From: Rebecca billardiae RCC1528
Taxonomy: Eukaryota > Protista > Haptophyta
Direction of reading: 5' to 3'
Assembly (NCBI GenBank): GCA_965240325.2
Contig: OZ251248.1
Location: 930,001-994,000 of the forward strand
Length of the DNA: 64,000 nt
Part shown: positions 36,960-41,355 of the stretch, in pieces
Numbering within the stretch: the first letter of the stretch is position 1
Layout: every line of letters starts with the position of its first letter
Made by a program: the position numbers and the translations under genes
Notes under the pieces: generated by a model
What the model saw: the letters and a program-made list of their open reading frames with translations, nothing else
Database searches by the model: none
What the model was told of the DNA's origin: nothing

Positions 36960-39900
36960 ATGGGGCGAGCCCGCGCACGGGTTGCGCTCGCGGCGGGCGC
37001 GGCGCTACTCGTGCCCGCCGGCGTCGCGCAGGCCGCGTTCGTCGTGACGCACGGCCCCGCCGCGCTCGTCGGCCTCGAGCTCGTCGCCGCCGAGCAAGCC
37101 TTCTCGCCGGCCGCGTTTGACGTCTCCGGCGCGCTCGTGCTCACGCAGCGCGAGGACTGGTCGTACGCGCACGGCTGCCCGCCGGCGTTCGTCGGGGAGG
37201 GCCAGCTCGCGGGCTCGATCGTCGTCAACCTCGACGCCGACTGGGCGCGCTGCAGCCACGAGCAGCACGCGCGCGCCGCGGGCGCGCTCGGCGCCGTGGC
37301 TTGGTGTGACCTGTCACACTCGTTTGCGCACGCCTTCCGCATGGTGCCGGGCGAGACGCGGCACTTCTGGGCGTGGGGCGACACGCGCTCGCTCGGCTCG
37401 CCGATCGCGCTGCACCTCGCCCAGCCCGCCGCGCTCCCGCTGGTCGACGCGCTCCGCGCCGCGGGCGGCTCGGAAGGCGGCGGCGCGCCGCCCATCCGCG
37501 CGCGCGTCTCGCACACGGGCGCCGAGCTGAGCGCGTGGCAGCGGCTGTGGCGCTCGCCGTGGTTCGCGCTGCTGCAGGCCGTGCTCTCGCTTCAGACGCT
37601 CGCGTGCGTCGAGCTCGTGCTCTGCCGGCTGCACGCGTACGTTCGCTCAGACGGCCGCCTGCAGCTGAGCGCGGCCAACGCCATCCTGCTGCTCGAGCTC
37701 CTCTTCTGCGCGGTCACGGCGGCGGCGACGCTGGTCGACCCGATGCAGTCGACGGGGCGGCTGCCCGTGCTGCTCTCGCTCGTGCTCGCCAGCCTCCCCT
37801 CACGCGCGCTCGCCACCGCCACCATCCTCTTCTTCTGTGCGTCGGCGCGCGCGCCGCCCGCGCCGCGCGCCTCGCCGCGCCGCGCCGCGCGCCCCGCGGC
37901 GGCCGGCCGGCCGGCGGCGACTGCTTGCGTGCAGCTGGCTGGCTGGCTGGCTGGCTGCGCGCTGGCCGGCGGCCTCGCTGACGCACGCATGCCCGCGGCC
38001 CCCTCCCACGCTCCGCGCCGCGCGCACCCACGCAGCCTACTTTGAGTCCGCGATGGAGGCTCAGGGACTCGCGCCCGCGCGCATCAGCCAGGTGGCGCAC
38101 GGGCGGTGCGTGTTTACGGCGGTGGCGTGCACGCTGCTCACGCTGCCGATCGCGGTGTCGGTGGTGCTGTACCTCGAGGTGCAGATGGAGGTGAAGCTGG
38201 TGCTGGTCGCGGTCGACGCGGCCATCATGCCGTGCGCGCTTCTCGCGCTCCACTCGTATCTCCTCGCGCGCGCGCGCGCGCGGCTCGGCGGCGTGCTCCC
38301 GACGCCCGTGCTCCGGCGGATGCTGCGGGTCCTGCGCGCGGCGACGGTGGCGAGCGCGTGCCTCGCGCTCGGCGCGGTGAACGTGTACATGCACTTTGGG
38401 CCCGGCCGGCGCGCCGCGCTGATGGCGTGGACGGGCACCGCGCGGCTGTGCGTGTGCTACGCGCAGGTCGAGGCGTTCCGACCTGTCGGCGTCCGCGTCG
38501 CCCGCCTCCCCCTGCGCGTGCTGTACGAAGTGGTGCTCGCGCGCTGCGTGGTGCCGCTCGCGCGAGGCGCGAGTGCCGGCCTCGGCGCGCTGCGCGCAAA
38601 GGGCGGCGCAGCCGCCGTGCGGCCGGCGCGCGGCGCGCCCGCGGCGCGCGAGCTTCGCCCGGCGCTCGTCGATGTGCGCCCCGCGCCGTGGTCGACCGCC
38701 GGGGGCGGCGGCGGGCGGCCGAGCGGCGGCGGCGCGGCCGGTGCGTGCGCGGGCGGTTACGCCGCGTCCGCCTCGGTGGCCGGCGCCTCGCGCGGCGCGC
38801 GCGCGGCGGTGGACGGCGCGCAGCAGCGCCGCTCACGCGTCGAGCCTGTGGGCTCTGCCGCCCACGGCGGCGGCGGCAGCCCGGCGGTCGTGCGCGCGAG
38901 CCACGGCGGCAGCGGCTGGGCCAGCCCTGCCAACCGACGGAGCGGCTCCGGCGGCGGCGACGGCGACGGCGGCGCTGGCTCCTTCTCCTGCCGCGGGGGC
39001 GCCGACGCGCCTTTCGATGGCGGCGGCTCCGCGCACCGCCGGCGCGCGCGCGCGCGCGGCCGGCGCGCCCGCAGCCCGGCCGGGCTCATGCGCAGCCACG
39101 AGGGGGGCGGCGCGCTCGAAGCCTCGCGGGACAGCGTCGACGTGTTCCAGAGCGTGGGCTCCTTCGTCTCCGGGCATTCTGCGAGCCTCCTGCGGCGCAG
39201 CGGCGTGCTGCAGCGCGCGTCGTGGCTCCGGCAAAGCGGCGCGCGCCGGGGAAGCCGCGGCGACGGCGGCGGCGGCGGCGGCGGGCCACAGGAGGTCGAG
39301 CTGCGCCGAGTCCTTGGCCTCTCCTACGCCGCGCTGCGCGAGTTCGCGGCGACGCACGCGCTCGGCGCGCAGGAGACGAGCGCGCAGGTCGGGCTCCGCG
39401 TCCGCGAGCTCACGGCGCAGAGCGGCCTGTCCTACGCCGAGCAGGCGCTCGACTCGGAAACCGCTTCGCCGCGGCTGCCCGCCGTGCGCCGCGCCAACGT
39501 GTTCGTGAGTCATGCTCAGGCGTGCTCGTTCGCCAAGCTGCTCGACGCGCTCGAGGCGCACGCGGCGCGGCACGAGCTCAAGCTGTCTGAGATGTACTGC
39601 TGGCTCGACAGTGCGCGCCGCGCGTGGCCATGCCTCACTGATGCGCCGCGGCCACGCGCCGCGCGCCTCCGCGCACGCGCGCCGAGCGCGAGCGCTCACG
39701 CCCGCCTCCGCCACCGTCGCGCTCGCGCCACACACGCCCGCCGCCCTTCCCGCGCAGTCTTCTCGATCCGGCAGCACGACGTGTCCGGCGACGTGCGCTT
39801 CATCGGCGAGATCGTGCGCGCGATCGGCACGCTCGTGATGGTGCTCGACCCTTGGGATGCGCCCGTGTGCCTCAGGCGCGCGTGGTGTTTGTTTGAACTG

Positions 39901-41355
39901 CATCAGGCGGTGGGCGCGGGGCGCGCGCGCGGGCCGCCGCCGCCGCCGCCGCCGCCCTCCGGCCGGGGGTCGCACGCCGCCGCGGGCGGCGCGGCGGCGG
40001 CGCGGAAGGAGGTGGCGCTGCACCTCACGCTCGCGCCCGCCGAGGCCTCCGCGCTCGTGCGCGCGCTCCACCAAGATCGGCCGGGGGCAGTAGCCGCCCT
40101 CGTCTCGTTCGACGCGCGCAACGCGCAGGCGTCGGTTGAGCAGGACCGAAGGATGATCTTTGAGGCGATCGAGGGTGAGTACGTGCTCTCGGCGCAGCAG
40201 GGGCAGATGCTCCGCCCGCGGTACAGGCCCTCGTCGCGCGGCGGCCGCGCGCGCGCGCCGAGCACCCTCCCAATGGAGCAGGCTGTCGACGCCTTCAACT
40301 CGACCGTCGCGGCCGAAGTGCGGCGCGCGCTCACCGCCTTCACTTGGGCCGTGGAGCACACGGGGGCGGCGCGGCCGGCGGGCGAGGGCGCGCTGGGCGG
40401 GGCGGCGGGGCTGCGCAGCCCGCCGCGCTCGATCCAGCACATGCGCTGCTACACCTCGCTCTCCTCCATCGCCTCCTCGCGCAACAGCGGCGCCGACGGC
40501 TCCTCCGGCCGCGCCACGTCCGGCGACTGGGCTGCGCGCGCGTCGGCGCGCGCGACGGGTGCGGACTGGGCGGCGCGTGCGCGGTCTGGTGACTGGGCGG
40601 CGCGGACGGCGGAGCTGCACGCGGCCGCGCACGCCGCCGACGCGGCCGAGTCGACCGAGGACGCCGAGCCCGACGCGCCGGGCCCGCACCACGGCTCGCC
40701 GCTCGGCCGAGGCCGCAAGCCGACGATGCCACTGTCGGCGCTCGGGCGAGCGCGCGCGCGCACGGCCGCCGCCTACGGCGCGCGCGGCTCAGCGTTCAGC
40801 AGCGGCGCACGCTGCTCGCTCGGCGGGAACGGCCTGGGCCGGGGCTCGGTGGGCGGCTCCGACCGTAGCGGCTCCGTCCTCTCCGCCGCCACCACCGCGC
40901 GCAGCACCTCGGTCGCCTCCTCCGCGATGACCACCTCGGCGGACGACGTCGGCGCAATGCTCGGCTTCGGCGCGTGTAACGGCGTCGGCGCGTGTGACGG
41001 CGTCGGCGGGTGTGACGGCGTCGGCGCGGGGAACGGCGTCGGCGCAGGGAACGGCGTCGGCTGTACCCCGCTGCCGCGCAAGCAGCAGCAGCCGCCCGCC
41101 ATGCTCGTCAGCCCGGCGGCGCTGCTCGCGGCGGCGGAGAGCACTACCTCGCCCAGCTCGCCGCCGAGCTCGCTGCCGCCGACGCCGGAGGTCGGCGCTC
41201 GGTTCGAGCGATGGTCCACGCTGTCCGCGCATGAGCAGCCCAGGCCGAGCCGAGCCGTCCGAGGAGGGCCAGGAGTCGGCGGCGGCGACGGGGTGGCCGC
41301 GGGGGCGCCGGCGGGCGGCGAGGGGCTGTCGTCTGCCCAGGGCCATGCTGACTGA
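36960..41355 (+). CDS. Signal peptide - PA-like domain - 7TM - TIR/HET-like domain protein; introns 37837-38035 and 39611-39757; C-terminus truncated by an insertion (ancestral stop 42066-42068)
   Basis: Signal MGRARARVALAAGAALLVPAGVAQA; PA-like FDVSGALV..GC..LAGSIVV..CSHEQHARAAGALGAVA; seven hydrophobic segments; cytosolic NVFVSHA...WLDIFSIRQH...VMVLDPWDAPVCLRRAWCLFEL...AQASVEQDRRMIF. Confidence 0.7.

Follow-up and report, generated by a model that had tools for sequence, protein, structure and literature searches.

A candidate membrane receptor gene joining a PA-like ectodomain, seven predicted helices and a TIR/HET-like domain in the haptophyte Rebecca billardiae

To our knowledge, no immune or cell-death module is as widespread among living organisms as the domains of the TIR superfamily; as far as we know, the animal receptors that carry a cytosolic TIR domain cross the membrane once, and the known fusions of a seven-helix membrane protein with an enzyme bear kinases, cyclases or phosphatases. 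A stretch of DNA from the haptophyte Rebecca billardiae RCC1528 raises the question of whether a TIR-type domain may also be borne, on one polypeptide, by a seven-helix receptor. This stretch, hereafter the window, comprises 64,000 nucleotides (GenBank assembly GCA_965240325.2, contig OZ251248.1, positions 930,001 to 994,000 of the forward strand), and a candidate immune or cell-death receptor had been proposed at its positions 36960-41355. The analysis presented here makes it very probable that a single gene lies there, coding in this order for a signal peptide, a protease-associated (PA)-like domain, seven transmembrane (TM) helices, a linker and a C-terminal TIR/HET-like domain (the C-domain). 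All coordinates given below are those of the window.

The gene and its relatives

The local DNA is very GC-rich, with 69-78% GC in 2-kb bins. The gene consists of three exons on the + strand, starts with the ATG at 36960, and its spliced open reading frame (ORF) comprises 1349 codons, i.e. 1349 amino acids. Exon 1 (36960-37836), delimited from its ORF and sequence, carries the signal peptide, the PA-like ectodomain, the helices TM1 and TM2 and most of TM3; it aligns with relatives to its final residue, and its GC content at third codon positions (GC3) is 0.94-0.96. Intron 1 (37837-38035, 199 nt, GTGCGT..CAG, phase 1) separates it from exon 2 (38036-39610), which was placed from the ORF, the splicing, the family alignment and the codon-position GC, and which holds the end of TM3, TM4 to TM7, a helix 8, the disordered linker, a pre-domain segment and the first third of the TIR/HET-like domain. 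Intron 2 (39611-39757, 147 nt, GTGCGC..CAG) is in frame and stop-free, which explains why the six-frame list gives a single ORF of 1172 codons. Once it is removed, WLD is joined to FSIRQH through a split Ile codon (WLD-I-FSIRQH). Exon 3 (39758-41355) contains the second part of the TIR/HET-like domain, a low-complexity tail and the TGA stop.

Both introns and the order of the parts within one gene, as put forward in the original prediction, were borne out by the splicing itself, by the way in which the exon pieces abut, by a family profile and by codon-position GC. In an alignment with 21 relatives, the pieces on either side of intron 1 meet exactly, being one residue apart, and at the position of intron 2 the relatives have no residues in the C-domain alignment. 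The spliced protein also matches, from end to end, a profile made from the N-terminal 500 residues of the relatives (E 1.2e-82). As for base composition, GC3 is 0.88-0.96 in the exons vs. 0.42-0.58 at second codon positions, and both introns are flat in this respect. Coding periodicity is retained in the linker (38581-39300) and in the tail (40351-41352, with a GC3 of 0.87-0.96), and these two segments therefore look translated instead of merely open by chance. Neither frameshifts nor internal stops occur in the spliced ORF.

A third intron, starting at a strong GTGAGT at 40175, was considered and rejected: neither of the two nearby AGs (40277-78 and 40280-81) restores the frame, the corresponding loop varies in length among relatives, and the segment was kept as coding. 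It is possible that further in-frame introns are hidden within the Gly/Ala/Arg-rich linker. Finally, a profile search found no second copy of either domain in the rest of the 64-kb window.

The queries in the searches for relatives were pieces of the exons, the open frame running through unspliced intron 2, or relatives standing in for the spliced protein. Word-indexed homologue searches, run with exon 1 and with the full-length relative P0005, returned nothing useful, limited as they were by a length window and by word sharing. An exhaustive HMMER (phmmer) search of 1.84 billion cluster representatives was conducted with the C-terminal piece, intron 2 being read through. It yielded 685 proteins related to the C-domain at E ≤ 0.001, among which 53 at E ≤ 1e-10, and the best E value was 2.4e-31; numbers of this kind put the match beyond chance. 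At least 24 of the best 150 C-domain matches possess the whole architecture, as judged with the N-terminal profile, and the relatives are only about 30-50% identical.

The full architecture was found, among others, in two proteins of the pavlovophyte Diacronema lutheri (KAG8471001 and KAG8471002), to which UniRef gives the name 'Heterokaryon incompatibility domain-containing protein'. The genes of these two proteins (P0012 and P0151) are neighbours on a 3-Mb contig, with the successive locus tags KFE25_009422 and KFE25_009423, and the proteins fall into one 90% identity cluster, which marks the pair as a recent tandem duplicate. P0005 is encoded by an uninterrupted 2349-nt ORF on a 2694-nt contig, and the closest relative (P0001, 43% identical) is present on near-identical 4.66-kb contigs in two runs. 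Since these relatives are uninterrupted ORFs on gene-sized contigs from other samples, they look like transcripts, though no poly(A) was seen on them, and this speaks for the fusion being transcribed into one mRNA. As a whole, the fused architecture is conserved across haptophyte-type protists.

A separate observation concerns the ORF of P0001, which has Arg/Pro-rich insertions inside its TIR/HET-like domain, one of them just before W-I-D, near the position of intron 2 in the window. The P0001 contig may represent an unspliced or partly spliced transcript.

Domains of the predicted protein

The predicted signal peptide (36960-37034) covers about residues 1-25 and ends in ..VAQA; it was recognised by eye from the hydrophobic N-terminus, which is also present in relatives. 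It is followed by the PA-like ectodomain (37041-37508), placed from a weak Pfam PA match and from the model of P0005, mapped onto the window by alignment. Pfam PA (PF02225) matches eight of 23 relatives, with a best E value of 2.7e-4, and the sole match of an NCBIfam scan was to the PA-containing part of M36 peptidases, far under the cut-off. The N-terminal part was modelled with AlphaFold on residues 1-500 of P0005 with the family alignment (mean pLDDT 85.9), this relative being 38% identical to the window protein in exon 1 and 23% in the piece at the start of exon 2. The model displays a signal helix, a beta/alpha domain (residues 24-175), seven long helices (189-428) and a short helix (440-455). 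Its ectodomain resembles the PA domain of aminopeptidase 2ek8 (Foldseek E 1.5e-4) and that with which Arabidopsis VSR1 binds cargo (Foldseek, TM-score 0.6-0.71, the value of 0.71 being by target).

About seven hydrophobic helices were detected in the window protein by hydropathy, and the helices of the model map onto them by alignment. These are TM1 (37557-37652, corresponding to model helix 189-220), TM2 (37671-37736), TM3 (37767-38061, split by intron 1 and also placed from the family alignment), TM4 (38089-38175), TM5 (38185-38277), TM6 (38302-38391) and TM7 (38401-38475), the last being the weakest of the seven in hydropathy. A helix 8-like amphipathic helix (38509-38580), mapped by alignment from model helix 440-455, comes next, and a conserved FxP.G.R...GPL motif stands immediately ahead of it. 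In a search independent of Foldseek, the best 50 representatives matched by the bundle (residues 189-438 of the P0005 model) were all of the G-protein-coupled receptor (GPCR) fold, with Z scores of 14.4-17.2 over 219-261 residues that take in all seven helices, in excess of the Z of about 13 up to which the tool advises caution for helical bundles. LYCHOS-type organellar GPCR-fold proteins are among these matches. With Foldseek, the same bundle matched CXCR2, Smoothened and a GPCR of class T at E values from 2.5e-3 to 4e-3. As modelled, the seven-helix part is a GPCR fold and not a member of a named GPCR class.

Concerning topology, Lys and Arg residues number 15 in the predicted inner loops vs. 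three in the outer ones. These counts, together with the signal peptide and the odd number of helices, place the N-terminus outside and the C-domain in the cytosol. The PA-like domain and the seven helices of N-out/C-in orientation, both read from the bare sequence in the original prediction, are supported by hydropathy, by the charge counts and by the seven-helix and PA-type folds of the modelled relative.

The same matches bear on a different role, that of a sorting or housekeeping receptor whose PA domain would bind cargo or peptides in endomembranes and whose C-domain would serve trafficking, or nutrient, mating or self-recognition signalling. While the likeness to the cargo-binding domain of VSR1 and to the LYCHOS-type organellar proteins speaks for such a role, and nothing at hand ties the gene to infection, it has to be set against the low identity among relatives noted above, and against the ties to conflict and cell death that the TIR/HET superfamily has shown in every setting studied so far (PMC10197012, PMC9153377). 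A sorting or housekeeping role is, in our judgement, quite unlikely.

Between the membrane part and the C-domain lies a Gly/Ala/Arg-rich low-complexity linker of about 245 residues (38581-39300), seen in the translation and in the GC3 periodicity. It leads to a conserved pre-domain segment of about 60 residues (39301-39480), which is found in relatives of all lengths, has the consensus LLLGVS..FL..F... and reads RRVLGLSYAALREF... in the window copy. Behind the C-domain, the frame continues into the low-complexity tail, in which an 18-nt coding tandem repeat (40944-41061) gives five or six copies of a GVG-rich hexapeptide. Most relatives have a far shorter linker and tail, and a comparison of the window tail with that of the closest relative revealed no meaningful similarity.

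The C-domain itself spans about 180 residues and is characterised by the motifs FVSHA / WLD-IFSIRQ / LDPW..P....RAWCLFE. Its first part (39481-39610, placed by profile and alignment) comprises strand A (VFVSHA), helix A and strand B (CWLD). The second part (39758-40350, placed by alignment, model and fold matches) begins with IFSIRQ, helix B, strand C, the PW..P loop and helix C with RAWCLFE, and goes on with a Pro-rich insert, strand D, helices D-E and a final helix FN..V...R.AL. Among 75 aligned copies, the near-invariant residues are the W and D of W-x-D, the PW..P loop, the R, W, C and E of R-x-W-C-x-x-E and a later Asp, and every one of them is kept in the window copy.

This domain was modelled with AlphaFold on residues 590-782 of P0005 with a 75-row alignment (mean pLDDT 94.6), the identity to the window protein being 55% in the exon 2 piece and 45% in the exon 3 piece. 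The elements of the model follow one another as a strand (IFVS), a helix, a strand (VWL), a helix, a strand (VIVLD), the PW..P loop, the helix of R-x-W-C-x-x-E, a strand and further helices. Foldseek returned RUN1 as the best match (E 9e-3) with about 40 further TIR rows, among which RPPT, SPARTA, RPV1, SNC1, RPS4, RPP1, AbTir, MAL and ThsB (E up to 0.3). A fold search against all representatives gave SARM1 (Z 7.9), RPP1 (7.4), RPS4 (7.3), MyD88 (7.1) and SpbK (7.1), and after them nucleoside deoxyribosyltransferases, ThsB and SEFIR, which share the same basic fold. When the Foldseek matches were rescored, the first 37 rows were all TIR domains, with RPP1 reaching Z 8.5 over 131 residues and SARM1 8.2. 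The best match of the C-domain among viral models was a TIR/WD40 protein of Tetraselmis virus 1 (E 7.5e-4).

At the level of sequence families, one member of the family passes the Pfam HET (PF06985) cut-off of 22.5 with 23.2 bits, and eight of the 75 relatives match HET at E ≤ 1. Pfam TIR_2 matches seven of the 75 at E ≤ 1 (best E 0.0075), two of which, scored individually, obtain 16-17 bits vs. a cut-off of 28, and ThsB_TIR gives 13.3 bits vs. 21.2, with a match that spans the helix-C motif. A comparison of the family profile with the PDB yielded PdTIR (3h16) as the sole TIR match, over strands A-B and at E 0.79; PDB sequence searches with the window exon 3 piece and with the two members having weak TIR_2 matches gave noise only.

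Taken with the motifs, these matches make it likely that the C-domain belongs to the TIR superfamily. A close counterpart by sequence is the HET domain, with which it shares the blocks F/Y-x-S-H/Y, W-x-D-x-x-C/S-I-x-Q and R-x-W-x-x-x-E, and their order. Unlike HET domains proper, the window copy and most members score under the Pfam cut-off, and the family adds the PW..P loop, a D-x-R-x-A...D...I segment and the final FN..V...AL helix. HET homologues were reported in 2014 from Haptophyceae, stramenopiles and green algae, with a three-block similarity that fades after helix C, and the same authors, Dyrka et al., linked HET to TIR via PdTIR 3h16 (PMC4986451). The most fitting description of the C-domain is that of a member of this non-fungal, HET-like branch within the TIR superfamily, with additions after helix C that are specific to the family. 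The TIR/HET-like motifs picked out in the original prediction (FVSHA...WLDIFSIRQH...RAWCLFEL) are accordingly those that the family conserves, and the fold comparison that it had called for, carried out on P0005, put TIR domains at the top.

Whether this domain is an enzyme hinges on the Glu of RAWCLFE (codon at 39895-39897), which has a Cys at -3, a Trp at -4 and an Arg at -6. The Glu is present in all 74 rows that cover its column, and the Cys three residues before it in 70; both sit on the helix after strand C in the P0005 model, as mapped to the window, that is, on the helix corresponding to alpha-C, where the catalytic Glu of TIR NADases is located. TIR NADases require a surface Glu on helix C, and plant TIRs have a neighbouring Cys (PMC9153377). 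The same Glu is reported for the HET domain. The catalytic TIRs (RPP1, RUN1 and RPS4, SARM1, AbTir, ThsB, SPARTA) are like the C-domain in the modelled fold, those of plants also in the apparent placement of a Glu with Cys at -3 on helix C (PMC9153377), but they are only 8-18% identical to it; the family does not reach the Pfam TIR cut-offs and has helices of its own after helix C. That the C-domain is an enzyme using this Glu is a tentative assignment, which we rate a little below an even chance.

A non-enzymatic C-domain would instead be a homotypic docking module, recruiting soluble proteins that carry the same domain, such as forms fused to tetratricopeptide (TPR) arrays. A fold search of a structure atlas did find the same domain on TPR arrays in oomycetes and haptophytes (TM-score 0.85-0.87), in line with the linkage that had been named for protists when the locus was first described, and these proteins are soluble. 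Exactly such a role was proposed for HET domains by Dyrka et al. (PMC4986451), many TIR domains are scaffolds (PMC9153377), and the TIR domains of MyD88, MAL, TRIF and the IL-1R family score nearly as well as the enzymatic ones. On the other hand, the helix-C Glu, Cys, Trp and Arg vary little or not at all over 75 diverse members, as one would sooner expect of an active site than of an interface, and the best structural matches are the catalytic TIRs RPP1, SARM1 and RUN1. We consider a pure adaptor unlikely, though it is the main rival of the enzyme.

The same domain (TM-score 0.83-0.87) was also observed in other clusters, fused to DUF285 repeats and to methyltransferase domains.

Repeats at and around the gene

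A 669-bp element resembling a miniature inverted-repeat transposable element (MITE), with identical 98-nt palindromic ends, occupies positions 41353-42021 and is flanked by a 5-bp target duplication, CTGAC (41348-41352 and 42022-42026). The TGA stop of the gene (41353-41355) consists of the first three bases of this element. Without it, the frame would run 13 codons further (NGDDSSGDDDAAA) to a TGATGA double stop at 42066-42071, so that the loss caused by the MITE is limited to the end of the disordered tail. On a larger scale, an inverted repeat of about 1.7 kb encloses the gene together with the MITE and a (TA)n tract. Its left (32379-34040) and right (42607-44276) copies are complementary to each other and lie 8.6 kb apart, with stretches of 1231, 235 and 147 nt at 100, 99 and 98% identity, respectively. 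No convincing ORF was found in the repeat arm. The two copies may be recent insertions of one element or may belong to a composite or foldback structure that carries the gene; they may also be an artefact of the assembly.

A further reading of the locus is that the family would be functional and the copy in the window silent or decaying, through the transposon at its 3' end and the repeats around it. The stop supplied by the MITE and the 13 codons removed, the near-identical inverted repeats on both flanks and the unusual length of linker and tail are what one would expect in that case; against it, the ORF has neither frameshifts nor internal stops, every family-invariant residue is intact, GC3 periodicity is strong across exons, linker and tail, and the MITE costs just the last 13 residues of a disordered segment. 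Decay of this copy is, on balance, very improbable. The locus does reveal that transposons have recently been active at such a receptor gene and in its surroundings.

Other repeats were also found in the window. Microsatellites of the (TA)n type, with interspersed GC-containing units, are located just downstream of the gene at 42150-42500, in a patch of 54% GC, and at 63764-63850. A tandem array with a period of 114 nt (5164-6033) comprises about seven to eight units that are up to 98% identical. Two foldback-type structures are present, at 9260-10325 and 27160-28713, one with 435-nt arms at 99% identity, 196 nt apart, and the other with nested arms of 116, 198 and 297 nt at 97-99%. A segment of 195 nt (11402-11596) is the inverted match of 28862-29056. 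The description of the locus as a transposon-rich island holds in part, resting on the MITE at the stop, the 1.7-kb inverted repeats on both sides and the microsatellites.

Proposed function and known counterparts

If these parts work together, the protein would be a one-piece membrane receptor with a TIR-superfamily cytosolic domain, clustered by a ligand, acting through its Glu and having stress, defence or cell death as output; for this reading as a whole we see the chances as evenly balanced. The signal peptide would place a PA-type ligand- or protein-binding domain outside the cell, a seven-helix bundle of GPCR fold would cross the membrane, and a long flexible linker would bear the HET-like domain of the TIR superfamily in the cytosol. 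Binding of a ligand outside would alter the clustering or the conformation of the receptor and so bring the TIR-like domains together, and known TIR enzymes are activated on being brought together (PMC9153377). The C-domain would then act via its helix-C Glu, by cleaving NAD+ or by making a nucleotide signal, and this would feed a stress, defence or cell-death response. Since the linker is long and floppy, clustering of the receptor fits better than rigid allostery through the bundle.

A role in defence or cell death, taken by itself, is possible though rather doubtful. More specific still, and unlikely as things stand, is the idea of a new class of one-component immune receptor, in which a sensor made of a PA domain and a GPCR fold would cluster its own TIR-type enzyme on a viral, bacterial or grazer ligand; as part of the same claim, NAD+-based signalling or cell death would be obtained without G proteins or adaptors.

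Several results weigh against this receptor reading. The gene model is a sequence-based prediction, and no RNA run is listed for the window. Both fold models are those of a relative, P0005, and not of the window protein. On the window copy, Pfam PA gives E 0.13 and 12.8 bits, under its cut-off of 23.9; at E ≤ 1, Pfam 7TM families match neither the window pieces nor the 23 relatives, and neither DRY nor NPxxY motifs were seen by eye in the translated helices. As for the C-domain, the window pieces match no Pfam HET or TIR family at E ≤ 10, although the domain could be scanned only in a form split by intron 2 or including it. The TIR fold scores are also moderate, a Z of about 8 being near the tool's background for a best match (7-8 are common), and the case for the TIR fold therefore rests on the uniformity of the match list and on the sequence evidence. 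Tight allostery or direct coupling between the seven helices and the C-domain is made less likely by the roughly 245 disordered residues of the linker. The putative equivalence of the invariant Glu with the catalytic one is based on secondary-structure position and motif, and we are aware that not every TIR domain with this Glu is an NADase. Even in fungi, the biochemical activity of HET domains is unknown (PMC10197012).

Among the known systems close to this architecture are the GPCR-bigrams of oomycetes and other protists, a concept of van den Hoogen & Govers, which also have an N-terminal seven-helix part of GPCR fold and a cytosolic effector-type domain on one chain (PMC6033456). In contrast to them, the window protein also has a PA ectodomain, and its disordered linker is very long; the list of GPCR-bigram partner domains published in 2018 contains neither TIR nor HET (PMC6033456). 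As modelled, the window protein has the architecture of a GPCR-bigram, with a C-domain whose catalytic nature is putative. Toll-like and IL-1 receptors likewise combine an ectodomain outside and a TIR-superfamily domain inside on one polypeptide. Toll-like receptors, however, have a leucine-rich repeat (LRR) or Ig ectodomain, one membrane helix and a scaffold TIR that binds adaptors, whereas the window protein has no LRR but a PA domain, a bundle of seven helices and a TIR of the HET-like branch; it does not qualify as a Toll-like receptor, and the likeness is one of functional analogy only.

Within the haptophytes, TIR proteins of Gephyrocapsa huxleyi that possess an extracellular region or several membrane helices were reported in 2025 to respond to virus infection (PMC12489294). 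They are similar in being haptophyte proteins with an intracellular TIR that keeps the Glu, and were proposed to be receptor-like signal generators in virus infection (PMC12489294). They differ in having been selected by canonical TIR Pfam families. The protein that was worked through as an example crosses the membrane with a single helix and bears an EGF/leucine-binding-like ectodomain, and neither a PA domain nor a GPCR fold is named in the main text of that paper (PMC12489294). A literature search for the combination of PA, seven helices and TIR/HET found nothing. We therefore regard the fusion as a new combination of known kinds, not a new category.

A GPCR-fold sensor joined straight to a TIR/HET-like domain would nevertheless amount to a new wiring. 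How algae sense viruses, and how unicellular algae choose between resistance and death, are largely open questions, and the family described here is a concrete candidate for algal pattern recognition. If the one-component immune receptor proves true, the family would be a haptophyte counterpart of the pattern-recognition receptor repertoires of plants and animals, and would offer a handle on virus sensing by bloom-forming algae.

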